Positions 3,344-45,293 of a stretch of DNA of 64,000 nt are shown here, one piece after another. The position numbers and the translations under genes are program-made. Location: positions 38,750,001-38,814,000 of the forward strand of contig NW_027266267.1 of assembly GCF_022045235.1 (NCBI RefSeq), written 5' to 3'. The DNA is from Haliotis cracherodii. Its lineage: Eukaryota. The notes below the pieces were generated by a model. The model ran no database searches. It saw only the letters and a list, made by a program, of their open reading frames with translations, and was not told the DNA's origin. Position 1 is the first letter of the stretch. Every line of letters starts with the position of its first letter.

Positions 3344-6300
3344 ATGGCCGCCACGTTCCTTTCCGTGCTATGCGTCGTCTTTGTTTTCTCGTCCTACACA
3401 TCAGCTACCTTCAAAGTCGCCCAGAGGAGGCTTCAAACATCTAATGTAAGTAGAATAGTATTTTATCATTGATACGGGCCGTAGGGGAAGATTAAAGCCT
3501 TTACTCGTCATGCCGAAGACCCGAGATCGATTCCCCACATGGGTACAAAGCCGCGTTCAGCAACATGCGAACGGTATACCGCCTGTTTGTAAATAATGCA
3601 GTCTGGACCATACAAACCAATGCTTCAGGTATTATACTTGAGAGTGAGTTGGGTTTAACGCCGCTTTTAACAGTTATCCAGTTATATCACGGCGTGTCAG
3701 TTTAATGTGGGAGGAAAGCCCGAAGTGATGCAGGTCTCTGACGTGTACCGCTTCGGTGAAACCCACGAGCACGGGTATGGTGCTGACAAACCTAGAAACA
3801 TAATCTGGGCGAACCGGGATTCGAACCAAAGGGACGCACAGCGAATCGCGGCGCCTAAGACGACTAGGCCACCCGTGCCCTAGGTATCATATTATGAATG
3901 GGGTAATATAACACGTCACCTAGTCTGACATTAACATTTTCTAATATTTCCCCACTCTAGTTTTGTAATATTATTAACATATTTACATTTTCTTATATTT
4001 CCCCACTCTAGTTTTGTAATGTTATTAACATATTTACATCTTCTTATATTTCTCTATTTGTCTTCATACCCTTGATGATCCGGCTTAGAATGGGTCTTCA
4101 GCCGCTTGCTTGATGCATGTCATTGTATCCCAAGTGCGTGGATCGATGCTCATGATATCAATCACCGGATTGGGTGCTCCGGATTATTTACAGACAGCTG
4201 TAAAATAGCTGGAATATTGCTGAGTGAGGAGATAAGCAACAAACAATTATATTTGACTTCAACCTTACATGACAGAAATGACAAAAAACATTTGGCGTTC
4301 AAATATTAGCTATAACTTTTTTCGTATTGTTTCGTAAAGCGTTCCAATATCTTATACCTGTACAACAGTTGCCTTCAATCTTTACTACGAAGTAAATTAA
4401 AACTTTTATCGTAATACATCTGTAACGTATAAAAACATTATGTCCCTTCCAGGAATGGCAGTTGATCGACTCGTGGACGTTCGAATCAGGCTACGTTCGC
4501 TTCAACTTCAACATCACCTTTCCTCGGGTAAGAACGCATCAATTTATATCAGCATTTTTGTGTCAAAGGTGTTCTCGCAAATCTCCTATCAAATGTGCAA
4601 CTGTGTCATTTGTTGAAAGATATACGTTGACTCTAAAGGACGGGGATATAATACCACTCTTTCAGGACATTTATGAAGCTGATAAAATTATTATTTCTTC
4701 TAAATTTATAGAAATAGTTACATTTGATACATCACTGGTATCATTGAAGTCTACATTTTAGTTATGACTTAACTAATGGATGAATCCTCTTGATAAAGGT
4801 AAAAACATCTTTACCGAAACGTCAGGCATCGATATAAAACAGAGATGTCTTCAACAGAGATGTGTTTGTGCCGGCTGTAAAACATTATCCTCTCTTCTTC
4901 CAGAGTTATTCCCCCATGAAACTGCTCTTCTACAAACAAGACCAGTACTTCCAGGCTAACGAAGGTTCTAAGGTGAGGGAGATCAGTGGGTGAGTGAGTT
5001 GGGTTGAACGCCACCTTTAGCAATATTTCAGCAGTAATGCGGCGGGGACACCAGAAAGGGACTTTGGGACCCTAAAAAATGAAGAGGTGAGGTGAGGTGA
5101 AATTGGGTTTAACGTCGCGTCCAAGATTGNNNNNNNNNNNNNNNNNNNNNNNNNNNNNNNNNNNNNNNNNNNNNNNNNNNNNNNNNNNNNNNNNNNNNNN
5201 NNNNNNNNNNNNNNNNNNNNNNNNNNNNNNNNNNNNNNNNNNNNNNNNNNNNNNNNNGGACTGAGGTGAATTTGCAATGAGCTGAGTTTACGGGTAGATC
5301 ATGTTTAATGGAGCACTATTAAATGCAATGTAAGCCAATGGTTTATATACGAACAACACCTTATTGGCTGTACATATTAAAATACAATGTGTTTGTCCTC
5401 TCAGTTTAGTGTTCAAAATGATGATTCCAAATATACCCCTCTCCATTTGAACTTTGAGAAAGTCTCCCTTACACAAAGTTGATGAGAAATATTGTTGCAT
5501 TTGGGTTTTTTTCTAAAACCAGACCTTTTAGTGGTCACGTGACATATCAGGTCGTACAATGTGTTAGCTTTAGACCGATGGTCGAATATAACGTATACAA
5601 TTATTTAGGGAAACAATTATATAAATACCACAAAGCTCAAACTAATATCACTGATTATGTTTGCTGGAACATGGGTGTCTCCTTTCCTTGTACAGAGATG
5701 CTTGCCAGAAACTATGGTAGTGGATTCGAATCTCCGTTCATCCCCTTCATGAATTAGGTTTGTCATCAGCAACGTACCAGAGGCTCACACCAAAGTGTTG
5801 ACAGTTAGAACATGCATCAAATTGGGCTTTCCTCCCACATCAAGCTAATACCCCTAAAATCGGTGTTAAACCCAACACACTCACAGATGTATGTTTGCTT
5901 TTTGTCACAGTCTTGCGACGAGAAGTTGTCAGTTCTACAATTCGCGGCCACCGGTCAGCAAATCCTGAACCTTGACGTTGGAATGACCCAAGCCGGCTGT
6001 ATGCAGCGTTACGACTCCACCATGGGGGACAGCGTCACCTGTAACGGCCGCGTTACCTTCAACGTCGATCGTGGTATGATGTGGTACGTGGTGGCCAACA
6101 GATGTGGCACAATGAACGGAATTTCGGTACGTATCACACTTTTATACCATTTTATCAGGTTCTTCTAACGAAAAGTTCATGTCACTTTTCTTAAAATAGT
6201 ATGCATCGCTGTGCTTTGTGGCTACCAAATAGTCTATGACATGATGGGTGTGAGAATCATTAATCTGGCACACCGTTCGCTGTTCCATGCTTGTTGGTGT

Positions 6301-6881
6301 ATTAACCCTTCCTCATCCTCATCGAACTATTCCTGGATGTTGGTCCCTGAAATGTTAAAATATGTATCAAGATTGTTTGGTGCTAAAACGTATGTTCGAT
6401 GGTCGAAATGAAAGGAAAACAACATTCAGAAATATTTTAAGTAGATTATAGAACCTCATCGGCCCCGTGCATTTAAAACAAACCTATAATAAGAATGAAC
6501 ATGTGAAGGGTAACGTCGCATCCTGCAGTTCCCTTCTGTTTTGGTTTGACGTCAGTTTAAAGACTAATTGAAAAAACAACTGTTCTCAATTCAATTCAGT
6601 TTACTTTACGTTTGTAGGATGTTGGTTTGTGAAATGTAAATAGCAAGCAACTGAAATAACGCCTAAGAGAGCATTATCTGACTTCCCACGCTTGAACATT
6701 CTGAAACATGCTTGAACGTCTTTCTCTCCCTCTGCAGGGCATGGACATGTGGTACTACATCGACAACATGGGGGAGCCGAACAACAACCCGCGCTTCCCG
6801 ATGTACTCGGGCCAATCAAAAGCCACGTTCACGGCCTTGACCTTCGTTCCATTCCTTGTTCTTAAACAATGCCTGGCGTAA
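3344..6881 (+). CDS. TMEM145/GPR180 N-terminal (GOLD-type) domain-only protein, predicted GPI-anchored, paralog A (201 aa); exons 3344-3445, 4453-4527, 4904-4972, 5911-6126, 6738-6881
   Basis: All four introns are GT-AG and phase 0. The joined ORF reads MAATFLSVLCVVFVFSSYTSA-TFKVAQRRLQTSN/EWQLIDSWTFESGYVRFNFNITFPR/SYSPMKLLFYKQDQYFQANEGSK/SCDEKLSV...WYVVANRCGTMNGIS/GMDMWYYIDN...YSGQSKATFTALTFVPFLVLKQCLA*. It has a signal peptide, 4 conserved Cys and a hydrophobic C-terminus, and the same exon layout as paralogs B and C. The family call rests on my recollection of the TMEM145 N-terminus. Confidence 0.88.
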
Positions 6882-9721: not shown

Positions 9722-12700
9722 ATACCGCCGTCCTACAGCAAACATAAAATTAAACAATGAGAAGGGGTAATAATTCTTAGATGATAATAATTCTACACTC
9801 ACGACTCTGAAGGGCTGAAGGGGCGGAGTGTTTGACGAAATGCTGAACATGAATGTGTTTCCCACCAGTTGGTAACAGACCAGTAAGGACATGGGGACCC
9901 AAGCTGCTTACATAACATGCCACCATCTGGATTGGTCGATCAGCTTTTTAACTCACAGTAACCACTTCTGATTAAAACAACTAATTAGACACTCACATCA
10001 GTGCGGAACCTGATATCCAAAATTATTCATCATCCCTAGGCATCGGAAGCAGTGACATTTACAGATTATTGTGAAACACCTTTTTATTTGTAATATTTAA
10101 AGTTGTCAATACATTTAGGGCGAAAGGCAGGTCAGAAAGTCGTGACAGAAACCATGGACTGCATTGAAATAATCATTTGATAACGGTATCGTATCTACAA
10201 CAACTAATTTACCTCAGACTTTCTGAAAAGCAAATTAATTGATACACCTAGAAAGCCGAACAATGTAAAATGGGGACAGCGATGTGTGAGAGACCCAGAC
10301 TTTATGGGGGCGGACGGGTAGCCTAGTGGTTAAAGCGTTAGCTCGTCACGCCGAAGACCCGGGTTCGATTCCCGACATGAGTACAATGTGTGAAGCCCAT
10401 TTCTGGTGTCCCCCCCGTGATATTGCTGGAATATTGCTAAAAACGGCGTAAAACCATACTCACTCACTCACTCAGACATTATGCCTGACATTTCAGAATA
10501 ATTAAAACGAGTAACACAATTAGTGTTGAAAACACTATCCATTTGGAACATCGAACCCAGAATTTCATCGTGACGAGCGAACGCCTCAACCACCAAGCTA
10601 TCCTATGTCCCTGATTAATACGTAACAGTTAGAACACCTACACACATAATGCTGCCAAACCGATGACAAAAACTTCAGGTCAACATTGTGTTATACACTG
10701 TATAATCGTGATGAGAGTGTCTGTAGAATTAAACACATATTTAATTATTTCATTTCAAACTGATACCATTCTCCTGCAGTAATCACATAATCTATAAAGT
10801 AGCTGACTGAAACTTTCACTTTCACAACGTACCTTAATTTCAATTTCTATTTTCCATTAACACGGTCAGTTGGTTCAGAATATGATGACCCTTTCCCAAT
10901 AAAGCAATTGATAACCTCAATAAATACCCAAACCAAATTTCAAATGTAATTTGTCTCCCTTTGGGTATACGGTTGTTTGGTTGGTTGGTGTGTTGTTTTA
11001 CGCCGCAATCAGCAATATTCCAGCTATATGACGGCGGTCTGTAAATAATCGAGTCTGGACCGGTTAATCAAGTGATTGATATCATGAGCATCGATCAACG
11101 CAATTGGGATCGATGACCTGCATCAACCAAGTCAGCGAACCTGACCACGCGATCCCGTTAGTCGCCTTTTACGACAAGCATAGTCGCCTTTTATGGCAAG
11201 CATGGGTTGCTAAAGACCTATTCTACCCCGGATCTTCACGGGTCTTTGGATATACGGACACACAATTGCATGTACATCTTTGTTGACATATATCGTCTTT
11301 GCAAGGTCTGTTCCTTTTGGATTTATTTATCTTTAGTGTTGAGTATGAAAGGACTCTTGGTCACTGATAGAACGGGGGAAGGTTAAAGTAGCCTTGCAAC
11401 TGCCGCCAACTTTACTTTGAATGCATTTGTATTTGCGATATATATATATACAACGTGTACACAAGTCAGAAAATCACCACTTTTGGTCCTGTGTATTGCG
11501 TACAAGAACCATACAATAAAACAAATACACAACAGCTGAAATCTTCTACATTCAGCTGTCAAGGTCGATATTTTCTGCAACAATATTAGTGTTGAGTGTG
11601 AAAGGACTCTTTGTCACTGATATAGCGTGGGAAAGTTATAGTGACCTTGCATTTGTCGTCCACTGTTCATTTAATGATCCTAAGCACGGTATATATATNN
11701 NNNNNNNNNNNNNNNNNNNNNNNNNNNNNNNNNNNNNNNNNNNNNNNNNNNNNNNNNNNNNNNNNNNNNNNNNNNNNNNNNNNNNNNNNNNNNNNNNNNN
11801 NNNNNNNNNNNNNNNNNNNNNNNNNNNNNNNNNNNNNNNNNNNNNNNNNNNNNNNNNNNNNNNNNNNNNNNNNNNNNNNNNNNNNNNNNNNNNNNNNNNN
11901 NNNNNNNNNNNNNNNNNNNAACGTTCAGTTTTACAGGCTCCATACAAATGTAGCAAATGGCTGTAGTAATTGTGACCACAACGCAGCAATGACATTTTAT
12001 TGAGCCTAAGGAAGAATATAAAACCCGCGACTGTGTTCAGAATTTCGTTCAAATAATGGCCGACGATAAACTGTGTACAGGGAAAGTTCCGATAAACAGG
12101 TAAAACACGGACAAGGTCGCGCGGTTCTCAAGACCAGGTATGTGAATGGTGACACCGGGCTACACCGTATAGATAAAATGAAAACATGTTGAATACTGAA
12201 TTATATCAAATATTACATGTTTGGACAGATTGTACTTACTTGGTCGCTATCTTTTTGTTAAGTCAGGAAAATATACGTGAACAACCACCATTAAGGGACC
12301 TTATAGATGAAAAATATCTTTATGACTTCTTATTGTATTTTAATACTACAGTATCCTGGGACCGCAAAGACATAAGCTTCAATTCCTATTTATTACAGAG
12401 ATACATGGCATCCAACATTTGGACTAATTTTCAGCAAAGTCCCATTTTGAGACTCGTAGCTGTTATGTAATGATTAAAGTTTTTGAAAATTGAAAGTAGG
12501 CATGTATGCTGAAATGTTTAGAATAAAGTTTGTATTACATTACGAACTAACGAGAGAAAAATAAGATATTTCTGTACAGTCCGCATACATGGCGACTTTA
12601 CGTCACACGTCTTTATGACGTCACAGCACAATTGTATCCCAGCACCCATAAGGTCCCCTTTCTCCTGGTGGGTCACATATATTCTTTTGCCGTCAATAAA

Positions 12701-12947: not shown

Positions 12948-13207
12948 TTGGTTGGTTTGTTGTTTAAGGCCGCACTCAGCAATATTCCAGCTATATGACG
13001 GCGCTCTGTAAATATTCGAGTCTGGACCAGATAATCCAGTGATTAATATCATGAGCATCGATCCACGCAATTAGGATCGATGACATGCATCAACCAAGTC
13101 AACCTGACAACCCGACCCTGTTAGTCGCCTCTTACGACAAGCATAGTCGCCTTTCACGGCAAGCATGGGTTGCTGAAGACCTATTCTACCCCGGATCTTC
13201 ACGGGTC
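12948..13207 (-). mobile_element. Retroposon family 1 (~260 bp, no tRNA head, (CAAA/CAAC)n tail), exemplar full-length copy; more than 20 copies or fragments in the window
   Basis: TSD cacatataggg (12937-12947) / cacagataggg (13208-13218). Other copies at about 213-442(-), 1150-1350, 2390-2600, 10973-11244(-), 13968-14228(-), 14456-14705, 14995-15252, 15804-16068, 17476-17695(-), 21218-21472, 22735-22978, 26864-27125, 35603-35870, 39010-39247(-), 48470-48700(-), 50375-50612, 58117-58385, 60905-61165 and 61730-61972. Confidence 0.92.
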
Positions 13208-15585
13208 CACAGATAGGGAAAGTGGTATAGATTTGAGACTCCTTACCGGACATCAAAATGATGTCAGCTTTGATATGACGTCATACCTCTATTATTTTCT
13301 AAATTTGTTATGAATGAATGACTCGCCCCTGCTCTAAGTCCTATTATGGCTATGAGTGATTGCGTGAGTGAGTATGGTTTTACGCCGCCTTTAGCAAGGT
13401 TCCAGCGATTTGATGGCGGGGGACACCGGAAATGGGCTTCACATATTGTACTCATTCGGGGAATTGAATGTGGGTCTTCGGAACGTTTTAACCACTAGGC
13501 TAGCCCACCGACCTACCACAGATCTGTATCTTAATACAGATTATACTATCACCACCAACTCGAATTGAGAAATGTCTTACCAAACATACAACATACTCAC
13601 ATATACAATATGTAAGTCTTTTTATATATACAAAATAATTAAACGACAATCATATAGATTTTTACAAAAATACCTGCAAGCCATATACCTCGTACAACAT
13701 AACCAAGGGCACTCAACTGACTGTCATGACGACTTACAGTACCTGAGCTTGACGTACCATGCCTCAGCTGGACTCATGTCATCACCATAATGACGTCCGT
13801 CATCACTCTGGCAATGACACGTTGTCAGCCTAGTAGCATCACACCATTACCTCTGGAACATCACGTCATCTTCCAAAGAAGGCCGCGTCATCCGCCTTGC
13901 ATCGTATGGCGCTATCCATTCAGAGACCAAATACTGAAATTGACAACACAAGATGCAGTCACAAACTGTTTGTTTGTTGTTTAACGCCGTACTCAGCAAT
14001 ATTACAGCTTTATGACGGCAGTCTGTAAATAATAGAGTCTGGACCAGACAATCCAGTGATTGACATCATGAGCATCGATCCACACAATTGGGATCGATGA
14101 CATGCATCAACCAAGTCAGCGAGCCTGACTACACGATCCCTATAGTCGCCTCTTTCGACAAGCATAGTCTCCTTTTACGGCAAGCATGGGTTGCTGAAGA
14201 CATATTCTACCCCGGATCTTCACGGGTCCAGTCCAATACTGGCTGATGTTAAATACTATCGGCCTTACATCAGCAGAAAAGCGGGAAATACATCTTGTTC
14301 AATTTCAGTGTTGTACAACATCCTTCCAATGGCAATTTCATAGTCACTCAAACGGAATTAAAACCATCTCAAGGGATCTCTCTTCAGGCCAGTACGAAAA
14401 GGCACATTTGGCATACTCGCTACAAACACATGTGTGTGCTCTCTTGGCGTATTGTCCCGGTAGAATCGGTCTTCAGCAACCCATGCTTGCCGTAAAAGGC
14501 GACTATGCTTGTCGTGAAAGGCGACTAACGGGATCGGGTGGTTAGGCTCGCTGACTTGGTTGATGCATGTCATCGATCCCAATTGCGTGGATCAATGCTC
14601 ATGATGTCAATCACTGGATTGTCTGGCCCAGACTCGATTATTGACAGACCGTCGTCATATTGTTGGAATATTGCTGAGTGCGGCGTTAAACAACCAACCA
14701 ACCAACGTATTGTCACAAAATGTGTTTAATCAGTCGATATAAAGGTCAATCTCAGTTGGGATTCCGGATCACAATTGATCCCCATGGATCTCTGGTCGTA
14801 GGATAGGGTGGACGGTCAGGCTTTGCGACCTGGCTGATAACGAATCATTGTACACTAAAGGCGTGCAGCGTTGCAAATAATATCAGTCACTGGATTGTCA
14901 GGTCCAGACTCGGTTAATTATAGGCCTTAAGAGACAGTGAGATGAGCTGAAATCGGGTTGTACTTATATAGCGACGTGCATTCACGTGTGTGTGGCACCA
15001 GTGAAGATCCGGGGTAGAATAGGTCTTCTGCAACCCATGCTTGCCGTAAAAGGCGACTTTTCTCGTCGTAAGAGGCGACTAACGGGATCGGGGGGTCAGG
15101 CTCGCTGACTTTGTTGATGCATGTCATTGTATCCCCCATTGCGTGGATCATGCAAGTAATGTCAATCACTAGATTGTCTGGTCCAGACTCGATTTTTTAC
15201 AGACTATTTCATATTGTTGGAATATTGCTGAGTGCGGCGTTAAACAACAAACACACATGTAGAAGCATACACGTTGTCACATATTGGTAAATATCAAGTG
15301 AATAATTACTTAGGTTGACTGACGTCGGTCCTCGGGAACACAAGTCACATCTACTCCATTAAACATAACAAGCTTGTTTATATCTAATTGGATGGTGGTA
15401 GCTTTGTCAATTCTACAAACTGTCACCCTTAATGGGTTTCCCCTACCCAGCCTGATTTCCTTGACAATAACATGACACAAACTCACTCATGCATAAGTAC
15501 AAATTAGTCATTAGCTGCATGTTCGCTGTATATGACAACAAGGTTACATCTCACAAAAGATCTGCAGTTGGGTCTCAGGGTTGCC

Positions 15586-15645: not shown

Positions 15646-18600
15646 ATGGCCGCTGTCTTTCTTTCCGTTCTGTGTGTCCTCTTTTTATCAGCCTTCACGT
15701 CAGCTACTTTCAAGGTCGCTCAACGGAGGCTTCAAACAGCTAGTGTGAGTATGACCATGCAGATCTCAATGATGTACATCGTGTACACATTAATTATGTC
15801 GGGGACCCGAGAAGATCCGGGGTAGAATAAGTCTTCAGCAACCCATGCTTGCCGTAAAAGGCGACTATGCTTGTCGTAAGAGGCAACTAACGGGATCGGG
15901 TGGTCAGGCTTGCTGACTCGGTTGATCCATGTCATCGTATCTCAGTTGCATAGATCGATGTTCATGATGTTAAACATTGGATTATGGATAAACTCGATTA
16001 TTTACAGACCGCCGTCATATAGCTGGAATATTGCTGAGTCAGGCGTTAAACAACAGACAAACAAACACAATAATGTGTGGAAGTTAATTTTACCCAACTA
16101 GTATGATGAAATTCTAATGTATTATTTAATGGTAAGATGACAATGATGGAGCTAGCATTTAGGGAACTGTTGAGAAGGCAGTCAAGGAGATTCTTTATTC
16201 GAAAAATCTTGAGGTGAGTTGAAATCTGGTTTAACGTCACGTCCAAGATTATTGCACTTATATAGCGACATGCATGTACGTGTGTGTGTGGCTGCTTGTG
16301 CAGGTCCCGACTGATGCCGATTTAAAGTGCCAGCTCACTGAGATACCATGCCGCAGTTTAAAATGAATAACCCACTCAGACACAGTATACTGACTCCGAG
16401 CCGACCAGTCTTTGTTTTTGCCCCTTAATGCCGAGCGCCAAGCAGGGTAACAACAAGTACCATATTTTAAGACCTTTTGGTAAGACGCGACCGGGGTTCG
16501 AACCCTGGACCTTTCGCTCTCCGGGCGGACGCTCTACCACTACACCACGGAGGCGGTCGAAAAACTTGAAGAGAGATATAGTGTATATACAGCAATTATA
16601 TTCAGTTCCTGCTTTAATGTTAAGATTTCAAAAGTTTCACCGCACGAAAATAATATGATGTTTTGTTATGTAGATATCAACACTGGACTACGTATGATAA
16701 GGCACTACTTTATGAAGCAAGATTCACCGGAATCGAGTCCACTCCAATATTGCTCATTGGCGATAGATGTATTTCGTAATAAATAACTTAACAATTAGTG
16801 TATTCTTTATACCCTAATGCAAACACAAGGCTTTTAAACTAGATACCACTATACATACATATACATGTATCACCGAGTCTAGTGAGCGTACATGTTTTAT
16901 ATATCTTATAATATAGATACAGTACGTTGACGTTACAGGCAAAAATTTACATGTATGAAAAGATGTACACTTCTTGAATACTATGTACCACAATTGTATT
17001 GACATTGTATTGATTGTATATATAAATGATGTACCTGCTGAGATGAATAAAGAAGGAAAAAATATCTTATGATATAGTTCGATTAATTTGATTCTAAATG
17101 ATCGCAAACAATGATCTTTTCCTTTCATGATTCGGTCATGTTCGACGATGTTGTGAGGTGTTCGGTTGTGTTCTATGCCATGCCATCGTGTGGAAAACGT
17201 AAAACCGTCAATGGGTTTGAACGTTTCTGGTGAACTTCTCAAGGTCAGGTGACTGGTATTTTGTCAAATGGGAAACGTTTAGATCTTGTGAACTTCACAT
17301 TACAGAATTGATGTGTGACTTTATTCCCTTCCAGGAATGGCAGTTGATCGACTCGTGGACGTTCGAATCAGGCTACGTTCGCTTCAACTACAACATCACC
17401 TTTCCTCGGGTAAGAACGCATCGTGGTCGGCGGCTTATGACGACCTTCCCTGTCATGTCCCAGACGTCATCAATAGGTTTGGTTGGTTGGTTTGTTGTTT
17501 AACGCCGCACTCAGCAATATTCCAGCTACATGACAGCGGTCTGTAAATAACCGTGTCTGGACCAGACAATCCAGTGATTGATATCATGAGCATCGATCCA
17601 CGCAATTGGGATATGATGATATGCATCAACCAAGTCAGCGAGCCTGACCACCTGATCCCTTTAGTCGCTTCTTACGACAAGCAAGGGTTGCTGAAGCGTC
17701 AAACTGACCAGTTGTGTGGTGGGTGGACAGTCCTATATAACACAGATGAAGATTCCTTCATTGGGACGGGTTGAGATGGTGAAGGGGTAGGGGCAGGTGG
17801 GGTGGGTGTGTGGGTGTTTGTTGTCTAAGGGTGCCGCAACTGGCTGTGCAGAGTCTCGTCCCTTGGGCACGCCAGAACCGTCGGGTCACACTGATTATGT
17901 TTCAAGGTTTGTCAAGACCATACCCGAGCTTGTACATGTAGGTTGCACCCACATCATGCTGACACGCCGTGTTGTAACTGGACTTTTGTTCGAGTGGCGT
18001 TGAACTCAACTCATCACTTCGCGAGATATGGCCACTGGGCTACCACTGTACCTATCCAGCTGGCACGACGGGGAAAGTATCAATGTTCATGGGGAATCCA
18101 GGACCATAACTACGGATATTATATTATGAATCCTTTTCAAGGACATGTGTCTTATGAATGATATATCACCACAAAATAACACTAACTCTTCTCAAACTTT
18201 TCTTTCCTTCTTTTTAGAGCTATGCCCCCATGAAGTTCCTTTTCTACAAACAAGAACAGTTCTTCCAGGCGAACGAAGGAAGCAAGGTGAGGATTCACAT
18301 CCATGAGATTGTTTTACTGCAGTGTACATGATCTAAGATTCAGCTTGAACCTATTCTGTTCTGGATTCTCCTTTCGGGTGAATTTTAGCGTGATATATAT
18401 GCACTTCGGAAATTCTTGAAATTGTTTCTAAGACTGAGACAAAAATGGACAGACAATTTATTGACCTTTGTTTCCTCCAGAAGAGCAAAGTCCAAGAAAT
18501 AACAATTACGTAGGTTTGGCCAAACCGATGATAATATGTACCATTTGGGAAAATGTATATGGATTGTTAAATGTTTTTAAGTGCAAACCACACACTCACA

Positions 18601-21600
18601 TCAAACATTGAGGGCAAGATCAAACTTTTAGCAACCAATTACTACATAATAACCAGCTACATCACGCGTTCTCTAATGCAAACTGCCGATCGAAAGAAAG
18701 AAAACATGTAAAAATCTTTTAATACATTGGCTAGTGGAGACTGAATTCAGGATGAAAACGATTGCCCAAACACACCCAACATCATCTGACTGTTCGATAG
18801 TCCGTGCAATTTGTGGCGAAAAGATTGTTCGTGATATTGTTATGAAACGGGTCTGTGTGTGACAGCATGAGCTGAAAGTGCATAGCAGATAAGGTGAGGT
18901 GAAATGGGGTTTAACGTCGCGTCAAAGATTTATTGCACTTATATAGCTACGTGCATGTACGTGTGTGTGTTTGTGTGGCTGCTTGTACTAGTCCGATGCC
19001 GATTTATAGTGCTTGCTCACTGAGATACCATACCGCAGTTTTAACACGAATACATCACTCTGACACAGTATACTGACTCCGAGCCGACCAGTCCTTGTTT
19101 TAGCCCCTTAATCCCGAGCGCCAGACGGAGTAAGAACAAGTACCATCTTTTAACGTCTTTCGGTATGACGCGGCCGGGGATCGAACCCCGGACCTTCCGC
19201 TCTCCGGGCGGATGTTCCACCACTAGACCACGGAGGCGGTCTTAAAAACACGCGAGGTTATTAGCAGAACAAAGAGGGGTATGTGTCTTTGAATGCCTCT
19301 GATGGTAACCACGTAGATCCTTTATCGGTCGGGTGCGGCCGACTGATCCCTGCTACAATGACAACCTCAGGGGTATCACCAGACTGGGCACACAATGGGC
19401 AGGCCGGAAGCTGGAGGCCAAATGTGATCACGCCACAGCAGAACCGGCATCTGCGCAACCACTTCCTGACGGTGACGTCATCGGCGTTGACGTGATTTGG
19501 ACGGAGTGTAAACATGATTACACGCTGCTGCCCTTCGTTTTTTAAGCCAGGTCAATGCCAAGCCCAAGGCTGCACGTGTGAGTGAGTGAGTTGGGTTTTA
19601 CGCCGTTTTTAACAGCATTCCAGTTATATCACGGCGTGTCAGATTAATGTGGGAGGAAAGTCCGAATTGATGCAGGTCTTAGACGTCTACCACTTCGGTG
19701 AAACCCACGAGCACGGGTATGGTGCTGACAAACCTAGAACATAATCGAGGCAAACCGGGATTCAAACCTACAATCATAGGTTTCTGGCGTGCCCAAGGGA
19801 TGCATAGCTGCACAGCACATTTTCTTAATAATAAAATAATATTGGAAACCATTTATCGTATCGATTCAGTTCGAAAGTTGGAATTATTTAACTTAAAAGC
19901 AAGTGGACTTGTAACGTAAAACAATCCTCACCGCCAAGGGCACCTAAACGTCTTGAGGCTATTATCATGAAACGACGGGCATATTTTTCCAACATTGGTA
20001 GGCGGTAGGACGAGACGGTAATTATGTGACTGTAAACATTCAAAAGCCTGATGAAGCAGGATCCATTTATTCACTCCCAAATCATCATCATCTTCACCTG
20101 ATTATGTTTAAGGGTTATACCAACGTGTTAATTGTCTTGGACATGCGTCACCTTTGGCTGTCATCCAACACCTAGTTGACATGCCGTGATATAACTGAAA
20201 TGCTCCTCAAATCGGCGTTACATTAAATCTCACTCACTCACGCATGTATGTATGTTTGCTTTTATGACAGTCTTGCGACGAGAAGTTGTCTGTTCTACAA
20301 TTCGGCGCCACCGGTCAGCAAATCCTGAACCTTGACGTTGGAATGACCCAAGCCGGCTGTATGCAGCGTTACGACTCCACCATGGGGGACAGCGTCACCT
20401 GTAACGGCCGCGTTACCTTCAACGTCGATCGTGGTATGATGTGGTACGTGGTGGCCAACAGATGTGGCACAATGAACGGAATCTCGGTACGTGATACACC
20501 TTTACAGCATTTTATCATTACATGATAGCCAGGACGAGTGCATAAATGTATTAACGTTTATTTATGTAAAATGAGTGAACGAGTGAGTGAGTGAGTTTGG
20601 TTTTACGCCGCTTTTAACAACACTCCAGCAATATCACGCCGGGGGACACCGGAAATGGGCTTCACACATTGTACACACGTCGGGAATCGAACCCTGGTCT
20701 TCGGCGTGACAAGCGAACGCTTTAACCATAGGTTACCCGATGGCCCTTTACGTAAAATGAAGAAGGGTTATAGTTACTCTGTAGGGTACAACGTGAAGTG
20801 CCTCAGCATTATAAATAGCCATCGGGTATGAAATGTAAGGACATTATCTCCTATCAATCGTGTGATATGGGTGTAGATGGACCTTATGGCCATTTCCCGC
20901 ATCCCCCTCAATGTAACTTTAAAAACACCAAGTGCTCTTGCTCCACCTTGCTGCAACATCCTTCAGTCATGTCATGGGTTGCTGAAGACCTACTCTACCC
21001 CGGGTCTTCACGGGTGTTCAGTCATGTCATGGGTTGCTGAAGACCTACTCTACCCCGGGTGTTCAGTCATGTCAGACCCGTTGATGGTGGGTTCTAACTC
21101 GCCATCATCACTTCAGATGTTCGGCCCCAATCACGCCTACACGACGCGACCTAATTCACATACTGTTTAATACGGTGAACATGTACATGTACAATCCTCA
21201 CTCACTGAAATAACATTAGATCCGTGTAGGATAGGTCCTCAGCAACCCATGCTTGCCATAAAAGGCGACTATGCTTGTCGTTAAAGGCGACCAACGGGAT
21301 CGGGTGGTCAGACTCGCTGAATTGGTTGATGCATGTCATCGTATCTCAATTGCGTGGATTGATGCTCAGGATGTCAATCACTGGATTTTCTGGCCCCGAC
21401 TCGATTATTTACAGACCGCCGTCATATTGCCGGAATAGTGCTGAATGCGGCGTTAAAAAACAAACAACAACAATCACTGAAATAACAAATATACTAGATA
21501 CATATTTGACGGCACTTCACGTGAAACGTTATGATACTATAACATGAAAGCGAACTAGTTGCGACAAAATCCTTTCCATACAAACAGTTATCTAAGAGTT

Positions 21601-21870
21601 AATATGTTATAAATGCACAATCGGTAATTAATACCAGTCGTTAATTATATTGATAAATTAATTACTGTATTACGAGAGAAGTTGTTGCTTGAACGTCTTC
21701 CTCTCCCTCTGCAGGGCATGGACGTGTGGTTCTACATCGACAACCAGGGGGAGACGGAGGGAGAAACCACCCGGCACCCTGGCTTCCCTACATACTCCGG
21801 CCAATCAAAGGCCACATTCACGGCCTTCACCTTGATTCCCTTCCTCGTGCTTAAACAGTGTCTGGCATAG
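15646..21870 (+). CDS. TMEM145/GPR180 N-terminal domain-only protein, predicted GPI-anchored, paralog B (204 aa); exons 15646-15744, 17335-17409, 18218-18286, 20271-20486, 21715-21870
   Basis: GT-AG phase-0 introns. Internal exon sizes 75/69/216 are identical to paralog A, and the protein is roughly 85% identical to A by eye. AATAAA at 22602-22607. Confidence 0.88.
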
Positions 21871-33135: not shown

Positions 33136-33270
33136 CCCTCCCTCACTTACTCACTCCAAACCCATCACACCGACCTCGAAATTCTGCTGAATTCGACATG
33201 GTTTTATTTTAGCAGAGCTTAACTTCTGTTGCGAAATAATTCATACGAGTATGAGATGTATGCTACTTAC

Positions 33271-36358: not shown

Positions 36359-37799
36359 TATTTTATTAAGAGCAAAGGTTATATCATAAAACACATATTT
36401 CATTCTGAGAGACTTCTGAAGCCGACATGGTAGATGCGGCTTTTTTAGAATTGCTTCTGTAATACCGTTACAGCTGGTTCATCGGATTATAAGTCATGTT
36501 CTCCTGAAATGCCGTCGTGCCGCTAAACCCATCCTCGTATTTCCTGGGTGTTATAAACCGATATAGACTGTCTTTTAAATACCCTGGATATGGGTATATA
36601 TAAGATATTGATAGCTGAAATTGTATTTCTTTACTGATTGAGGATACGGACGTTTTACATCATTTACATTTTAATCATCTGGATGTGTACATGTCAATCA
36701 ACCTAACAAGACTCTTCATTCACGTGAAGAATAAACGTGTAGCGATGATTGACAGGACTGACGTTCGATATTCAGGCTTACCAATAGATACATCGTTTCC
36801 AAAAACAGAATTTGAATAAATTGTACCTGTCAAAAAAACTTTTACGAAGGTTATCGTGAAAAGATTGAGCTGTGACTTTGTNNNNNNNNNNNNNNNNNNN
36901 NNNNNNNNNNNNNNNNNNNNNNNNNNNNNNNNNNNNNNNNNNNNNNNNNNNNNNNNNNNNNNNNNNNNNNNNNNNNNNNNNNNNNNNNNNNNNNNNNNNN
37001 NNNNNNNNNNNNNNNNNNNNNNNNNNNNNNNNNNNNNNNNNNNNNNNNNNNNNNNNNNNNNNNNNNNNNNNNNNNNNNNNNNNNNNNNNNNNNNNNNNNN
37101 NNNNNNNNNNNNNNNNNNNNNNNNNNNNNNNNNNNNNNNNNNNTCTATCTACCACAACATATTTCATAAAAAAAACGTATAAAGCTCCCTTGTCCTTTCC
37201 TGCAAAGTGACTTAACATGTACAAATGTATCTGTAAAAGTCCTCAGAGCCCAACATGATTATAATGGAGTGAGCGTCATTGAGTATTTGTATATCTGTGT
37301 TTATAATCAAACCTGTATTCATTCGTCATGTTTATTTCTGACAAAGCCTCCGAGACGTTCGAATTGTGGGAACACATTGCAGGCTAATTGTACAGATCAA
37401 CCCTTGGTGTAAGAAGGAAAGTGTCACAACTAGAATGTAATATGGCTTCAGACTGTCACCAACCGTGTCTGACATAGATACATTGTGACTCACGCAGTCG
37501 ACCAGCCTCGAGTTGGATTGTACAAAAGCTTCATGTTCCAACTCATGTTGCACTTGAAACGCACGTACTTTCTGATTTAATCAGATTACAAATAACACAT
37601 GCATCCAGCCAGCCAATCACCAATTCGAATGGTATTAATTGCTGCTCTCATGTGCTCCTTGAGTGTGGGTTAGAAATCCGCTCATAAACGCTGCACTGAT
37701 TGAGTGCGGATAACAAACACGCTCTGATGCATTGCTTGAGTGTGGTTTAAACATCTGCTCTGATAAATTGCAAACCTTAAGTGACTCTAATAGACTGCC

Positions 37800-39600: not shown

Positions 39601-42600
39601 ATGGCGGGCATGTGGTTGCTTACTGTTTGTAGTATACTGACCTGCGTCTCAATTATATCAGGAAAATATGCAGAGGGAACAATTGTCTCTTTGAAGGTGA
39701 GTGTTGCCCTTTTGAAATTATTGGTATTTGTTTCAATATTGAAGACAGGTTATTTAGCATAAGTCTGTCCTAAGTACACGCAGTTGGTCTGAATACAAAG
39801 AAAACCCACGCGGTTCCTTTCCAGGCGTGGGGACACAGGTGGTTCAGGCATCTTATCCGCCGCAAGTCTACATGCAATCAGAATCAGATTAATTATGATT
39901 CTTTGTGCGCTGGATTTTACTACAATCATAAACTTGGGGAATTTACATACTGTCATTNNNNNNNNNNNNNNNNNNNNNNNNNNNNNNNNNNNNNNNNNNN
40001 NNNNNNNNNNNNNNNNNNNNNNNNNNNNNNNNNNNNNNNNNNNNNNNNNNNNNNNNNNNNNNNNNNNNNNNNNNNNNNNNNNNNNNNNNNNNNNNCACTT
40101 AAAATGTGCTAACCTCCATGTAGAATTCCTGCTCAAAGCGCTACATTCAAAATGTCACTTTGAACAAATGTGTCTTTAGTTTTGCTTTGAAAGTCTGAAA
40201 TGTTGACGAAAGTCAAATCTCAAGTGAAAGATCAACTGAGACACTGTTCACAGCGTCCTCTACATCGACCCCCCCCCCCCCCCCCCCCCCCCACCCCATT
40301 TTGGATTTGGGTCATTATTTAAATAAACGTGTGTGTGATTGTCTATTGCAGGGCTGGGTCTTCATGGACAGCTTCCTCTTCCCCGCCGGCCTCGATGCCT
40401 CATTCACCTACAACATCTCCTATCCAAGGGTAAGTCATTCAACCGACATCAAGGCCTGTTTAAGCTACAACCTCGTCTACCAAAGGGTAAGTAACTCAAC
40501 CGACATCAAGGCCTATTTCAGTTACCACCTCGTCTACCCAAGGGTAAGTAACACAACCGACATCAAGGCCTATTTCAGCTACAACCTCGTCTGCCCAAGG
40601 CGTAAGTCACTCAACCGGCATCAAGGCCTATTTCAGCTACAACCTCGTCTGCCCAAGGCGTAAGTCACTCAACCGGCATCAAGGCCTATTTCAGCTACAA
40701 CCTCGCCTACCCAAGGTTGAGTCATTCAACCGACATCAGATGGTGAACATCTCAAGCAAACCTGTATTTGTTCAAGGATAAAACTAACTGAGACGCTGTT
40801 CTCATTATCATATTGGGATATGTATTTGAAGCAAATCTAATGCATTTCTTTCTTTCTTCGGCGATAAGCTGTTAAACGATTCAATTCCCATCATGTGTTC
40901 AATATGTGACTCTTCTGGAGTTCCCCTTCGTATTCTGCTCACATATTGCTAACATCAGAGTAAAGTCACCCTCATTGAACCTCTTAGATTTGGAGAGCAA
41001 AATTTCAAATTCATCCATTAATTATGTTAATCTATATAAATAAATGAGTAATGGCGAAATGTGTTGTTCACATTAAAGATTCATCACAATTTGAAAGTGA
41101 AAATAGGCTGAGGTCTCTTTGTATGCAAATCCGGCACGTCAATAAATATAGCTGCGGCATAATAAGTAATAATGGTACTTTTAGATTTCACATAGGGTTG
41201 GTTATAATGGGCAAAAACTGCCTATTACTTCTTGAACAAGTTCGTCTATTTTCACCACTTCACTAGTTACATCTCCTAAAAATGTCAGATTCACCAAAAA
41301 GATTTCTTGAACAACTTTTTAACATATTCACGCGAAACATTTGTGTCGTAACACGCGTGTGTTGAAATGAACGAACTATAGTTCTTATTCATGCGAACAT
41401 ATCTGAAAACTTTCTTAACCATTTCTAATTTGTTTTGCTCATTTCTTAAATTATGCAGATCATGTAGGGTAAAAAGTCCCTTTTCACATAGTGTCCCCAG
41501 AAGGACATCTGGACACCCTGATATTGATAAGTGATTTGTTGTTTTTATGGTTTGATGATACATAAAGCTACAAACCACATCATCTGCATCATTATTATAA
41601 TTATCACTACTTTTTAAATAAGTATTAAACAAATGTATAATCGTTACGTTCCTTTTGATTGTAGGTCTACATTGGATATGCACAGTTTTTGTCAAAAATA
41701 AGTTACCCTCTAAATAAAAAGCTCATTATCGTTTAGTATTTCCAAACTTTTGGAAGTTTAAATGACAATATCAAAGCATCAGCATAATGTAAGTGGTATT
41801 GAATAAAGAAACGATCCACTGACTTCTTGGTTGGATTGAGGTGACGATTCTAAACCTGACTGAGGACATCTTTAGATAGAAATCCACTGATGCTTGAGAG
41901 GAGGGGGTGTCGCATTCATATTAAGTCGCACTTTTGGCTAGGGTCCAGGGGTCGCATTCTTTTGGAGAAGCATTAATTTCACGATTTACAGTATATGTCC
42001 TTGTTTTACAGCAATACGCTCCAATGTTTCTGCTGTTCTATGGTGGAGAACAGTTTGATCAGGCCAACGATCCTCTCAAAGTGAGTCTCCCGTGATCAGA
42101 TCTACGGATATGCAAATCCTTAATATCAATTGTATTGCTATATAATACATTGGACTCGCATACTACCAAAACGAATACGTACATAGCATAGTTGAGACAG
42201 TCGGAATCGGTCTGGAAGACGGGATACATCTTCAGGAACTAGTTTTCGACATTGAGTACTGTACACAAAGAAGTGTGGAAAGCATTCAGACATGAATGTT
42301 TGAAAAGAGGGAACCGCATATGCTAGGGGATACTTTGTATTGGCAGAGAGGACACATGCGCTACGTTTACCCTGCTACCACGTGTACGATACTGTTACCG
42401 GTGGCAACCGACCATTTTATTCAGTCTGCATGTCAGGGAATACAAATTTATTCCGAGAAAGTAGAAGTCAAATATTGTTCTTTTACCCATAAGATCACAT
42501 GTCATCTTTAACAATACAAAAATGTTCCCACCTCTGAAAAATGTATATAAAGATCAACGCAAAGCTTACAAACTAAGCCATTCATGATATTCTTTTGAGA

Positions 42601-45293
42601 CGAAATATATTTTCAAACACACACATTATTTCCTATAATAGGAGGACCACACATTTGTTGACACACAACACTTTCTTGCCAGGTCATCCGAAATGTCCAG
42701 TTAACGATGTTTTTTCTGTTAAACCGTCAACCTTCCTTCTTCCAGTCATGTCAACAGAAGATCGCCCTCCTTCAGTACCCCTCCTATTCAAGGCAGATTC
42801 TCAGCCTGGACACCAGTAGACCCAGCTCGGGCTGTTACAACCGCTACGACCGGTTCAAAGGAGACTACGTCTTCTGTGTTGGTCGTTTCAACATAGATAT
42901 CGACAGCAGCTCTGGGTGGTTCGTGACCGCCAATCGGTGCGGGGATCAGAACGGCGTCACTGTGAGTTCTGTAACCTTGAGAATTATGTGCGTACTGTCT
43001 ACACCCGAATCTGGTATGATGAAAGTATGGGAATGCCCAGCAATCTGTTTCAAAACAGATTCGATAAAAATGCATTGTTATTGTGTAAATTATAGGCCAG
43101 TTGGCATCCACACATATAAGTTTTGAACACAGCTGCCTGAAGAAGTCTGTTTTAACTGTGGGCGTTCCCATACTTTTCTGAACGTATATATAACATAACT
43201 CAGGATCAAAATTTGACATTGTTGTATACAGAATGTTGACATATGAAATACCGAGTTATTAAAAAAATTGGGGCAAATAATGTTTATGCCCATTCTAACA
43301 CTATTGTTTGTAGAGTTGCTCTGTCAAGAGTTCTTGTTGCTTGTGAACATCCTTTGTGATGTATACTCAGAGTTGCCGCAACATGATGTTGTCACTTTTA
43401 ACACTTGGTAAGAACAGTGACAGAATTTACCGTAACGAAAAACAATCCATATGAAAGCCCTTCCTGACCTGTGTGTTGGTCATGCCAAACGAGTGGTTTC
43501 AGAGGCAAGTCATCACAATCAGCAGTGAGTGTGTCGACCTTGTGCATTGAGACAGGTCTTTAACCTTCGTTTCATTGAAGCAACTAAACGTTGAAGAATT
43601 GTCAGGGGAATGACATTCAAAATCTGAGGTATGATAAGCCGGTGACGTTGTTGGCGGAACTGGAAGAAGTCGCAAACGTCATTCCATTTCATCCCACACA
43701 TGTTCGGTTTGTGTCAGATCAGGGGATGGTTAACGCTTTTAGCAATATTCCAGCAATATCACGGCGGAGGACACCAGAAATGGGCTTCACACATTGTACC
43801 CATGTCGGGAATCGAATCCGGGTCTTCGGCGTGACGAGCGAACGCCTTAACCACTTGGCTACCCGACCGCCCCGTTAACACATTAACATTGAGAAAGAAA
43901 CGTGCTGCACTGACGTGCTGTCCACTGCGTGTATCGACGTTGATGTCTGACTGGGCATCTCGCACGGATGTTGTAGATGCGTAGACGTCGTCGGACTGTC
44001 CTCTAAAATACGTCTCTTTTGCCAGGTATGGTACGGGCTTTGAACGCCTGGACCTTTGTCGAAGCTGCGTAAAACGAATACATATGTCTTGGTGAGAGGT
44101 TATGACGGGTGGGCGGCCATTTCGATACAGTCTCGGAGGGTGGTGTTTCGTTGTTAACGGCGCCATAAATGTGGAAGTTGAATTGACGTGCGTGGTTAGA
44201 GGTACATATGACACGCCATCAGTCATTTTCATTTAGGCGTGGAATGGTGATATCTCAGGAAAACCATTAGTGGCGTAGACTGTCAGTGGTAAGGGATTGT
44301 ATGTCTGTCCTTTAAAGCAGTTATTCCCTAATAGTCGTTACTTCTTGCACAAACATGCAATATCAGCGACGGTGGTTAATTAGCTTCTTCGAGTTACTCG
44401 TATATCAGAACTATTTTCACTGGTTCCAATCCAGAAATTAATGTAAAGATCTGCAAGTGAAAATAAATCCACGTCATGACAGCTTTCACCTTTGGTAATA
44501 TTTTGCTTTGCGTTGCAGAGGTGTTAATATTTTCCCTTCGAGTGAAACATGATCCTCACACAAATAATGTTTACAATTACGTAATCGTATGGTCTTAATC
44601 TGCTCTTTGGTATAGTAGCCAAACTGGCACCGTGTCTCACCATGTCTGTGGTGTTCCGATGAACATGGTGTGGATGATGGGGGCGTCCTATAACTTTACG
44701 TATTCTTCACAGCATTTACTCTGTTTATTTGGGACGCCTCCGTGGTCTTGTGGTAGAGCGTCCGTCCGGAGAGCGGAAGGTCCAGGGTTCGTTCCCCGAC
44801 CGCGTCATACCAAAAGACGTAAAAAGATGGTACTTGTTGTTACCCTGTCTGGCGCTCGGCATTAAGGGCTAAAACAAGGACTGGTCGGCTCGGAGTCAGT
44901 ATACTGTGTCTGAGTGGGGTATTCATGTTAAACTGCGGCATGGTATCTCAGTCGGCTAGCACTATAAATCGGCATAAGTCCGGACTAGTACAAGCAGCCA
45001 CACACACACGTGCACGTCGCTATAAAAGTGCAACAATCTTGGACGCGACGTTTAATCCAATTTCACCTCACATCACCTGTTTATTGGGCTGGTGTATTCG
45101 GGTGTACTAACATACTGTTTTGATTTTGGTGTATTCTTTTCTTCTCCAGGGTTTACACCTGCAGTACCGTATCGAAGGCAGTGTGGGCGTCGACAAGGAT
45201 CAGGTTTTCCCCTTTCACTCCGGTGAAGGGAGGGTCACTATTCCAGCCGTGACATTCATCATGATGGTAGCCCTTGGACAGGTCATTGTTTGA
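39601..45293 (+). CDS. TMEM145/GPR180 N-terminal domain-only protein, predicted GPI-anchored, divergent paralog C (200 aa); exons 39601-39696, 40352-40429, 42012-42080, 42746-42961, 45150-45293
   Basis: GT-AG phase-0 introns, exon sizes 96/78/69/216/144. Protein: MAGMWLLTVCSILTCVSIISG-KYAEGTIVSLK/GWVFMDSFLF...FTYNISYPR/QYAPMFLLFY...LK/SCQQKIALL...RQILSL...SGC...FC...WFVTANRCGDQNGVT/GLHLQYRIEG...HSGEGRVTIPAVTFIMMVALGQVIV*. The motifs KYxxG, WVF, YP, QIxxL, SGC, W-F/Y-xxxxxCG and GLxLxY parallel TMEM145. Confidence 0.88.
40400..40737 (+). repeat. 57-58-bp tandem repeat of the exon 2 / intron 2 junction of paralog C
   Basis: GTAAGT donors at 40430, 40487, 40544, 40602 and 40660; each is preceded by a copy of the exon end. 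Confidence 0.9.
43519..44230 (-). pseudogene. Decayed Tc1-like transposase with an inserted SINE
   Basis: GRPPVITSHQDICIRFTQLRQR near the N-terminus and IPLTILQRLVASMKRRLKTCLNAQGRHT at the C-terminus. Confidence 0.7.
44731..45071 (+). mobile_element. tRNA-headed SINE (~340 bp) with a Meta/MESC-like core and (CACCT)n tail
   Basis: A/B boxes followed by gtcataccaaaagacgtaaaaagatggtacttg. Other copies at 16212-16558(-) and 18892-19241(-), with a fragment at 5085-5129. Confidence 0.78.

Follow-up and report, generated by a model that had tools for sequence, protein, structure and literature searches.

Three tandem abalone genes encode stand-alone TMEM145-type GOLD domains with a putative GPI-attachment signal

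We found three neighboring five-exon genes (A, B, and C), all on the plus strand at C4:38.75-38.81 Mb of Haliotis cracherodii, that each encode a TMEM145-type GOLD domain without a seven-transmembrane (7TM) domain. Our preferred reading, which we hold to be probable though with reserve, is that A, B, and C are functional tandem paralogs encoding small secretory-pathway GOLD glycoproteins, in which the C-terminal tail would be a GPI signal with its omega site at a conserved S-G and the domain would serve as an extracellular binding module. The GOST proteins (TMEM145, GPR180, TMEM87, GPR107/108, and Wntless) are largely orphan. They are defined by a GOLD domain directly joined to a 7TM domain (PMC12716839, PMC11605061).

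Results

We rebuilt the exons of the three genes from coordinates alone; positions refer to the window, that is, the whole 64-kb stretch of DNA that was analyzed. Gene A (3344..6881, +) encodes 201 aa, with a predicted signal peptide, TMEM145_N, and a hydrophobic C-terminal tail, in exons 3344-3445, 4453-4527, 4904-4972, 5911-6126, and 6738-6881, the last including the stop codon. Gene B (15646..21870, +; 204 aa) has no internal assembly gap, and its exons lie at 15646-15744, 17335-17409, 18218-18286, 20271-20486, and 21715-21870. Gene C (39601..45293, +; 200 aa) shares about 37% identity with A and B and has its exons at 39601-39696, 40352-40429, 42012-42080, 42746-42961, and 45150-45293. All introns are in phase 0 with canonical splice sites: every acceptor has a polypyrimidine tract followed by AG, and the donors read GT[AG]AG or GTACG. 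The codons per exon in A/B/C number 33/34/32, 25/25/26, 23, 72, and 47/51/47. The rebuilt translations were identical in every letter to the NCBI proteins P0003 (A), P0004 (B), and P0001 (C), which bears out an earlier note on this DNA that described three intact five-exon genes with phase-0 introns and matching exon sizes. That note had also called the genes a tandem family; the family consists of this trio, as a genome-wide search for a further close copy elsewhere found none. NCBI and UniProt already hold the three proteins as "uncharacterized protein" with PF21892 assigned. The 3' ends and the expression of the genes are based on the NCBI models and on conservation.

Unfilled assembly gaps lie in intron 3 of gene A (5130-5257) and intron 1 of gene C (39958-40095), and intergenic gaps lie at 11699-11919 and 36882-37143. 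The gaps touch no exon, and gap-free gene B shows the same five-exon structure. A 57-nt tandem repeat of 5.9 copies (40403..40738, +) copies the 3' end of gene C exon 2 together with its GTAAGT donor; this adds in-frame donors at 40487 and 40544, and the ORF 40301-40663 remains open.

Comparison with Pfam identified the domain. The whole proteins matched PF21892 (TMEM145_N; model length, 131 positions; curated cut-off, 28.1 bits) with 71.3 (A), 68.9 (B), and 57.0 (C) bits and E values of 1e-15 to 1e-19, far above chance, and the match covered positions 4-128 of 131 in A and 2-128 of 131 in C. Exon 4 (A, 5911..6126; B, 20271-20486; C, 42746-42961; all +), with its 72 codons, encodes four conserved cysteines and the beta-sandwich core (Pfam positions 60-127), and exon 4 alone scored 35.6 (A), 35.1 (B), and 25.6 (C) bits (E 1e-8). 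The domain cysteines C83, C111, C125, and C146 (gene C numbering) are all kept in A, B, and C; all of the 76 family members compared have C111 and C125, and at least 90% have C83 and C146. Other features noticed previously, namely, an N-I-T/S sequon in exon 2, four aligned cysteines in exon 4, and S-G followed by a hydrophobic C-terminus, were likewise present in all three proteins. Residues 1 to 22 form a hydrophobic segment, followed by small residues at -3 and -1 (T-S-A in A/B and I-S-G in C), a candidate cleavable signal peptide. No second Pfam family besides PF21892 was matched in A, B, or C. As judged from sequence and model, each protein has one predicted TMEM145-type GOLD domain and no other domain.

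The AlphaFold (AF2) model of the C protein (pLDDT 86) had its best structural match in the GPR180 N-terminal domain, 9fow_A (Z 10.3; rmsd 3.0 Å; 113/123 residues). This structure was the sole PDB representative at a Z of at least 8 among 48,161 scanned and ranked top in both VIA searches, while the GOLD domains of p24 and SEC14L gave Z values of about 7 to 7.7. Foldseek alone returned a weak match (E 0.025), and the family profile found no match among PDB sequences. The predicted C model thus has a GOLD-like beta-sandwich that resembles a solved GOST N-domain, with short decorating helices as in the GPR180 GOLD domain (PDB 9FOW; PMC11605061). However, GPR180 and the C protein share only 12% sequence identity, and GPR180 has a 7TM domain, which C lacks. 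The initial assignment to a TMEM145/GPR180-type N-terminal GOLD domain is therefore supported by the Pfam profile and the predicted-structure match.

We searched for 7TM coding sequence within the 64 kb by tblastn and tblastx with TMEM145 7TM sequences and obtained nothing below E 0.07. Genome-wide, PF10192 matched only in C45, at C4:36.27 Mb, and in C67. As a control, the Argonauta TMEM145-like protein P0006 matched PF21892 and PF10192 (152 bits), so that a 7TM domain in A, B, or C would have been detected. The claim that the 7TM part is missing therefore held, with no PF10192 in the proteins and none in the window. Lacking a 7TM domain, A, B, and C do not have the GOST architecture (GOLD plus a PF10192 or PF06814 7TM) and are relatives rather than members.

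A full-length TMEM145 gene lies on the same chromosome, 2.5 Mb upstream of the trio (C4:36228449-36275270). The earlier note had proposed comparing intron positions with such a gene; the boundaries of exons 2, 3, and 4 and the start of exon 5 coincide, which points to descent from a TMEM145-type gene. These common boundaries imply that the trio are DNA-level duplicates that lost all 7TM exons, and they rule out retroposition as the origin. The reading frame of the trio runs about 21 codons beyond the end of the parent's exon 5, which falls just after the FSADEF linker motif and is where TM1 starts in the parent. By exon structure and sequence, then, the predicted products end where TM1 would begin. 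TMEM145 (PF21892 plus PF10192) resembles the trio in its N-domain over the whole profile, in the four cysteines, in exon boundaries, and in chromosome, and it shares with gene C a mature N-terminus of K-Y-x-x-G. The trio differs in lacking the 7TM domain and cytosolic tail, with a frame ending ~21 codons after the FSADE-equivalent motif, in its sequence identity of about 20 to 29% to 7TM members, and in having the conserved N-I-T/S sequon instead of the family's usual motif before Y-P.

TMEM145_N proteins that lack a 7TM domain but have similar tails are also predicted from Lingula, Acropora, Intoshia, and further ENA/Logan assemblies, and all are uncharacterized. They include Lingula anatina XP_013387053 (202 aa), an Acropora "TMEM145-like" protein (199 aa), and the two-domain Intoshia linei OAF70446 (376 aa), none of which has PF10192. 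As in the trio, a putative signal peptide is followed by PF21892 (one domain or two) and a hydrophobic C-terminal end, with no PF10192, but these forms are only 20 to 27% identical to the abalone proteins. This layout is thus not confined to abalone. In a quick tree, the abalone clade nested among 7TM members; an AU test did not reject a single clade of the abalone, Lingula, and Acropora forms (p 0.85). Haliotis also has a fourth paralog (P0054, C4:33.09 Mb), with the domain present and the hydrophobic tail missing altogether.

Single-pass TMEM145_N proteins of molluscs with an E-T-S-A end (abalone C6:26266736-26267929, chiton XP_064596083, and Biomphalaria XP_055873052) also lack a 7TM domain, and one is encoded in the same genome. 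However, they have an intronless ORF, a true TM helix, a long His/Pro-rich cytosolic tail, and a PDZ-ligand-like end, and they form a separate clade with good support (SH-aLRT 99). The p24/TMED cargo receptors share with the trio a small luminal or extracellular GOLD beta-sandwich (Z about 7.0 to 7.4) and, as proposed for the trio, a minimal membrane anchor, but they belong to another Pfam family without sequence similarity. They are equipped with a coiled coil and a genuine TM helix, and their cytosolic tail binds COPI/COPII. Assignment of A, B, and C to p24/TMED (EMP24_GP25L, coiled coil, TM, COP tail) was rejected: they have PF21892 only, and nothing follows the hydrophobic end.

Exon 5 (A, 6738..6881; B, 21715-21870; C, 45150-45293; all +) encodes the last beta-strand, a linker, a conserved F-P..S-G that contains the candidate omega site, and the hydrophobic end up to the stop. 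In all three proteins, the C-terminus consists of 15 to 19 hydrophobic residues and then the stop, with no cytosolic residues beyond. The candidate omega to omega+2 positions at S-G read G-E-G in C and G-Q-S in A/B; 5 or 6 mixed residues come next, and then 14 or 15 hydrophobic residues up to the stop, the spacer being short and rather hydrophobic. A simple rule scan with the tail set at 19 residues found no textbook omega site in the abalone proteins. In an alignment with full-length TMEM145 proteins, S-G falls on their FSAD[EQ] linker motif, which lies ahead of TM1. Between the C orthologs of two Haliotis species, the domain is 86% identical and the tail 40%, yet the tail is hydrophobic in both, as expected of a cleaved targeting peptide. 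The tail of A and B is well conserved (17/20). Together, S-G, the spacer, and the lack of anything after the hydrophobic run make a GPI-attachment signal plausible.

Discussion

The same tail could instead stay in the protein as a short type I anchor in the membrane, left over from TM1 and without a cytosolic tail. The tail stands where TM1 of the parent stands; at its widest extent of 19 residues, with a mean hydropathy of 1.5 to 2.2, it would be barely long enough to cross a membrane; the AF2 model shows a helix there (residues 185 to 199); and its 17/20 conservation in A and B would fit an anchor. Nevertheless, no residues or positive charge follow the hydrophobic stretch, which is interrupted by a proline and has K/Q (A/B) or G-Q (C) near its end, leaving about 14 or 15 clean residues. 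Moreover, a conserved small pair, S-G, lies 8 to 10 residues upstream of the tail, and the 40% conservation of the C tail also argues against an anchor, which we regard as a rather unlikely, if serious, alternative to GPI attachment. We give still less credence to soluble luminal or secreted proteins, acting as p24-like ER-Golgi cargo adaptors or released, with the tail as a retention or degradation feature. GOST and p24 GOLD domains do act mostly in trafficking (PMC11605061; PMC9711517), and the tailless P0054 agrees with this proposal, but the tail persists across the three paralogs, H. rubra, and the unrelated forms without a 7TM domain from other phyla, which argues for membrane attachment.

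That the genes are decaying, functionless partial duplicates of TMEM145 is very unlikely. They are indeed partial copies of a bigger gene, and they have lower Pfam scores (57 to 71 bits) than any other family member checked, but the reading frame is open in 15/15 exons, the splice sites are undamaged, and 4/4 structural cysteines are retained. Between A and B, exons 1, 3, and 5 gave a dS of 0.89 and a dN of 0.13 (dN/dS about 0.15), and H. rubra retains orthologs; these sequence comparisons indicate that A, B, and C are functional genes under purifying selection. It is equally hard to credit that the models are incomplete and that alternative splicing joins exon 5 to 7TM exons far away, which would make the genes ordinary GOST receptors, as an in-frame stop follows the tail in the three paralogs and both H. 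rubra orthologs, the NCBI models end at the same stop, downstream of each gene comes the signal-peptide exon of the next, and neither the window nor its genomic neighborhood contains PF10192-like coding sequence.

If the tail is a GPI signal, exchange at S-G would place the mature GOLD protein on the outer leaflet of the plasma membrane, or the protein may be shed. For mouse TMEM145, the GOLD domain by itself suffices to bind stereocilin, a secreted protein (PMC12789471). By analogy, the abalone module, which lacks the 7TM and cytosolic parts of the parent, might tether an extracellular protein ligand, present it, or sequester it. A decoy or co-receptor role for the trio could be envisaged from this one mammalian study.

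The earlier note had proposed a new family created by 7TM loss and GPI gain. That claim is too broad: we found no description of receptor-less TMEM145 ectodomain proteins in the literature, but the three proteins already have database entries with PF21892 assigned, and given the invertebrate look-alikes in Lingula, Acropora, and Intoshia, the trio is not evidently a recent "loss plus gain." Tentatively, and with more doubt than confidence, the trio may be part of an old, metazoan-wide, undescribed class of 7TM-less lipid-anchored TMEM145-type GOLD proteins, with a single domain in molluscs, brachiopods, and cnidarians and two tandem domains elsewhere, that would act as surface tethers or decoys for TMEM145 ligands.

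The abalone locus presents a GOLD domain of the TMEM145 branch freed from its 7TM domain. Purifying selection has kept this domain in three tandem genes, and it is probably lipid anchored. The exon structure of the locus illustrates neatly how the ectodomain of a receptor can turn into a putative tail-anchored surface protein via truncation at the start of TM1. Retention of the trio suggests that the GOLD domain can work as a self-contained extracellular module, in agreement with the stereocilin binding. Small stand-alone GOLD proteins are easily expressed and could be baits for GOLD-domain ligands; if the metazoan-wide class is real, they would provide a simple soluble handle on the ligands of the orphan TMEM145.

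Structure of the three tandem genes

Reading frames and splice signals define three genes on the plus strand of the window, which spans C4:38750001-38814000 of Haliotis cracherodii. Gene A comprises exons at 3344-3445, 4453-4527, 4904-4972, 5911-6126 and 6738-6881 (201 aa), gene B exons at 15646-15744, 17335-17409, 18218-18286, 20271-20486 and 21715-21870 (204 aa), and gene C exons at 39601-39696, 40352-40429, 42012-42080, 42746-42961 and 45150-45293 (200 aa). These sizes are the ones reported in an earlier note on this DNA. All 12 introns are in phase 0, with GT donors and polypyrimidine-AG acceptors. The translations agree in every letter with the NCBI predictions P0003 (A), P0004 (B) and P0001 (C), each named "uncharacterized protein"; these entries were used for whole-protein searches, and the window was searched exon by exon. 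Of the window's four assembly gaps, one falls within intron 3 of A, one within intron 1 of C, and two are intergenic. Since the gap-free gene B has an identical structure, the exons do not depend on unread sequence. The N-I-T/S sequon in exon 2, which had been noticed previously, is kept in A, B, C and P0002, the Haliotis rubra ortholog of C.

The products carry a TMEM145-type GOLD domain and lack the 7TM part

The earlier note had proposed that the three proteins carry the N-terminal domain of TMEM145 and GPR180, and both a Pfam match and a structural match bear this out. The whole proteins matched PF21892 (TMEM145_N, a GOLD domain) with 57 to 71 bits, from profile position 2 or 4 to 128 of 131, and no other Pfam family was matched by them. 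Exon 4 alone matched profile positions 60-127 with 35.6 (A), 35.1 (B) and 25.6 bits (C), the last being below the cut-off of 28.1 bits. The four cysteines of this exon, also singled out earlier, correspond to the conserved cysteines of the TMEM145_N family. The AlphaFold model of C, based on a 76-sequence alignment, reached a mean pLDDT of 86 and superseded an AF2 run on a 5-sequence alignment (pLDDT 59.6). It shows a beta-sandwich (residues 22-165) with one helix N-terminal and one C-terminal of it. Among 48,161 PDB representatives, GPR180's N-terminal GOLD domain (9fow_A) was the sole chain with a Z of at least 8 against this model (Z 10.3, rmsd 3.0 A, 113/123 residues). The GOLD domains of p24 and SEC14L scored Z values of about 7 to 7.7, inside the general jelly-roll background. 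A language-model atlas likewise indicated GOST N-domains. Foldseek alone returned no match at E <=0.001, and the family profile matched none of the PDB sequences.

Loss of the 7TM domain, the second element of the original proposal, was borne out as well. In the full-length Argonauta TMEM145-like protein P0006, used as a control, both PF21892 and the 7TM family PF10192 were detected, so a 7TM domain would have shown up by the same method. A six-frame search of the whole genome with PF10192 gave matches only at C45:15.03 Mb, C4:36.27 Mb and C67:10.13 Mb. When full-length TMEM145 was compared with the window by tblastn, only the three fourth exons matched, and in tblastx the best E reached by 7TM exons of the abalone itself was 0.07. 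Each gene is closed by an in-frame stop that is conserved across the paralogs and H. rubra, and downstream of each lies the next gene's own signal-peptide exon. Candidate poly(A) signals are located past the stops, at 7568 (A), 22183 (B) and 45694 (C). Taken together, the domain assignment and the 7TM loss are well supported.

A 294-aa ORF on the minus strand (25815-26699), in which about seven hydrophobic segments are accompanied by a C-terminal P-E-V-P-K-P-E-D repeat, was considered as a stray 7TM part. It was rejected, as it had no Pfam match and no similarity to the 7TM region of TMEM145 or other GOST proteins; it probably belongs, as an exon, to an unrelated gene between B and C that encodes a multi-pass membrane protein.

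Origin from a TMEM145-type gene

The true TMEM145 gene of the abalone is located on the same chromosome, 2.5 Mb upstream of the trio (C4:36228449-36275270). We compared intron positions with this full-length gene, as had been suggested, and found that the boundaries of exons 2, 3 and 4 are common to both, the N-domain exons of the parent starting and ending at the same residues. Its 25-codon exon starts one residue ahead of the conserved Trp and stops one past the Y-P motif, its 24-codon exon corresponds to exon 3 of the trio (23 codons), and a third exon, with about 70 codons against 72 in A, B and C, runs from one residue before the first Cys to about 5 to 6 past R-C-G. These common boundaries indicate that A, B and C arose by partial duplication, at the DNA level, of a TMEM145-type gene. 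A genome search with P0001 and P0003 found no further close copy.

The G-[ML]-x-L-x-Y strand likewise opens exon 5 of the parent, which closes directly after the linker motif FSADEF, and TM1 is encoded by a separate mini-exon. The conserved [FY/H]-S-G-[EQ] of A, B and C aligns under FSAD[EQ] of full-length TMEM145; past this point, their frame continues for about 21 codons, consisting of spacer and hydrophobic tail, before the stop. Judged from this alignment, the trio is truncated at the point where the first membrane helix begins. Either the former TM1 exon or read-through into what used to be intron 5 may have supplied the tail, a matter on which such short hydrophobic strings give no statistical signal.

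The C-terminal tail

The earlier note had further proposed a GPI anchor. The C-termini of A, B and C consist of 14 to 15 clean hydrophobic residues, or 19 by the widest definition, with no residues after them. Upstream lies a conserved F-P..S-G motif. If the Gly of S-G is taken as omega, positions omega to omega+2 read G-E-G in C and G-Q-S in A and B, and 5 to 6 mixed residues separate this region from the hydrophobic end. This layout fits the usual arrangement of a GPI signal. A crude rule scan of the three proteins gave no omega candidate when the tail was set to 19 residues.

When C is compared between H. cracherodii and H. rubra, identity amounts to 86% in the domain, 71% in the signal peptide and 40% in the tail, which is hydrophobic in H. 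rubra too despite this low value. Having diverged but stayed hydrophobic, the C tail behaves like a cleaved targeting peptide. The tails of A and B are better conserved (17/20). On these features, a GPI anchor is the probable, though by no means certain, fate of the three proteins. That the hydrophobic stretch, which ends the protein with nothing beyond it, is instead retained as a short membrane anchor seems unlikely, and a soluble or luminal location of the proteins, all of which end in this stretch, less likely still. With the putative GPI anchor, a surface-binding role would be a reasonable reading by analogy.

Selection and exon homogenization

All exons of A, B and C are open and their splice sites are intact. 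Comparison of exons 1, 3 and 5 between A and B gave a dS of 0.89 and a dN of 0.13 (dN/dS of about 0.15), and the two genes are old duplicates under clear purifying selection. In H. rubra, the ortholog of C (198 aa) is 79% identical, and the A/B ortholog, a partial 142-aa model, lies on one contig with it.

Exons 2 and 4 of A (4453-4527, 5911-6126) and B (17335-17409, 20271-20486) are 98 to 99% identical in DNA (dS 0.05); exons 1, 3 and 5 are 79 to 83% identical, and the introns are unalignable. The high identity drops off within about 10 nt of the splice sites. This exon-delimited homogenization between A and B is real, and one candidate mechanism is conversion in short, homology-limited tracts.

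Repeats in the window

In gene C, a 57-nt tandem repeat of 5.9 copies (40403-40738) duplicates the end of exon 2, including its GTAAGT donor. The extra donors lie in frame at 40487 and 40544, within an ORF that is open as far as 40663; their use as alternative 5' splice sites could thus add 19 or 38 residues to the GOLD domain. Minisatellites occupy 596-1140 (53-nt unit, 10 copies), 27487-32502 between B and C (55-nt unit, 92 copies, 5 kb), 51691-53495 (31-nt unit, 58 copies) and 60175-60947 (52-nt unit, 15 copies). A short interspersed repeat with similar ORF fragments is found in many copies on both strands (e.g., 13071-13256, 14358-14582, 15732-15935, 22696-22887 and 26855-27037); it is window-wide and occupies the introns and spacers of all three genes.

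Relatives in the abalone genome and in other phyla

The black abalone genome contains two more 7TM-less relatives, at C4:33.09 Mb and C6:26.27 Mb. The former (L003, G000:C4:33093158-33096373), a short fourth TMEM145_N paralog, matches a 177-aa H. rufescens "TMEM145-like isoform X3" (P0054) and also a 201-aa H. asinina protein; a hydrophobic tail is missing from it, and its exon-4 boundaries are those of A, B and C. The latter is an intronless 397-aa ORF (L001 1384-2577; G000:C6:26266736-26267929) encoding a single-pass protein in which a signal peptide and TMEM145_N (120 bits) are joined to a single TM helix and, on the cytosolic side, a His/Pro-rich tail that ends in a PDZ-ligand-like E-T-S-A. 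Such E-T-S-A single-pass proteins of chiton, Biomphalaria and abalone form a well supported clade (SH-aLRT 99), in which the chiton and Biomphalaria members bear the erroneous names "midnolin homolog" or "rho GTPase-activating protein gacZ".

Searching 1.84 billion representatives with a profile yielded just 119 matches at E <=0.001, and a final word-based homolog search added only 3 further ENA proteins. The best score beyond Haliotis was 73 bits, which marks the trio as a divergent, Haliotis-restricted group. About 49 of the 119 matches contain 7TM domains. Some two to three dozen others lack a 7TM and combine one or two PF21892 domains with a hydrophobic C-terminal end. This architecture is found, for example, in Lingula anatina (XP_013387053, 202 aa), in Acropora "TMEM145-like" proteins (199 aa), in Intoshia linei (OAF70446, two domains) and in ENA and Logan proteins.

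In a quick tree from a 140-column alignment, the abalone clade (SH-aLRT 99, long stem) was nested among 7TM TMEM145 sequences, as an independent abalone-specific origin would have it. This origin was rejected after the tree constrained to place the abalone, Lingula, Acropora and two Logan forms in one clade scored better (AU p 0.85, same alignment). Either a single old 7TM-less lineage or repeated truncations may account for these forms.

Implications

GOST proteins are defined in recent work by a GOLD domain directly joined to a 7TM domain (PMC12716839, PMC11605061, PMC9711517), and our full-text literature search found no paper on 7TM-less GOLD proteins of the TMEM145 or GPR180 type. The suggestion of an undescribed family holds in this respect only: because A, B and C are already public as uncharacterized predictions and their architecture occurs in other phyla, they are not a categorically new family. 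Mouse TMEM145 without its 7TM part retains binding to stereocilin, via the GOLD domain (PMC12789471); this is the only functional lead. The trio represents a natural stand-alone GOLD module, which could help to find ligands of the orphan TMEM145 branch.
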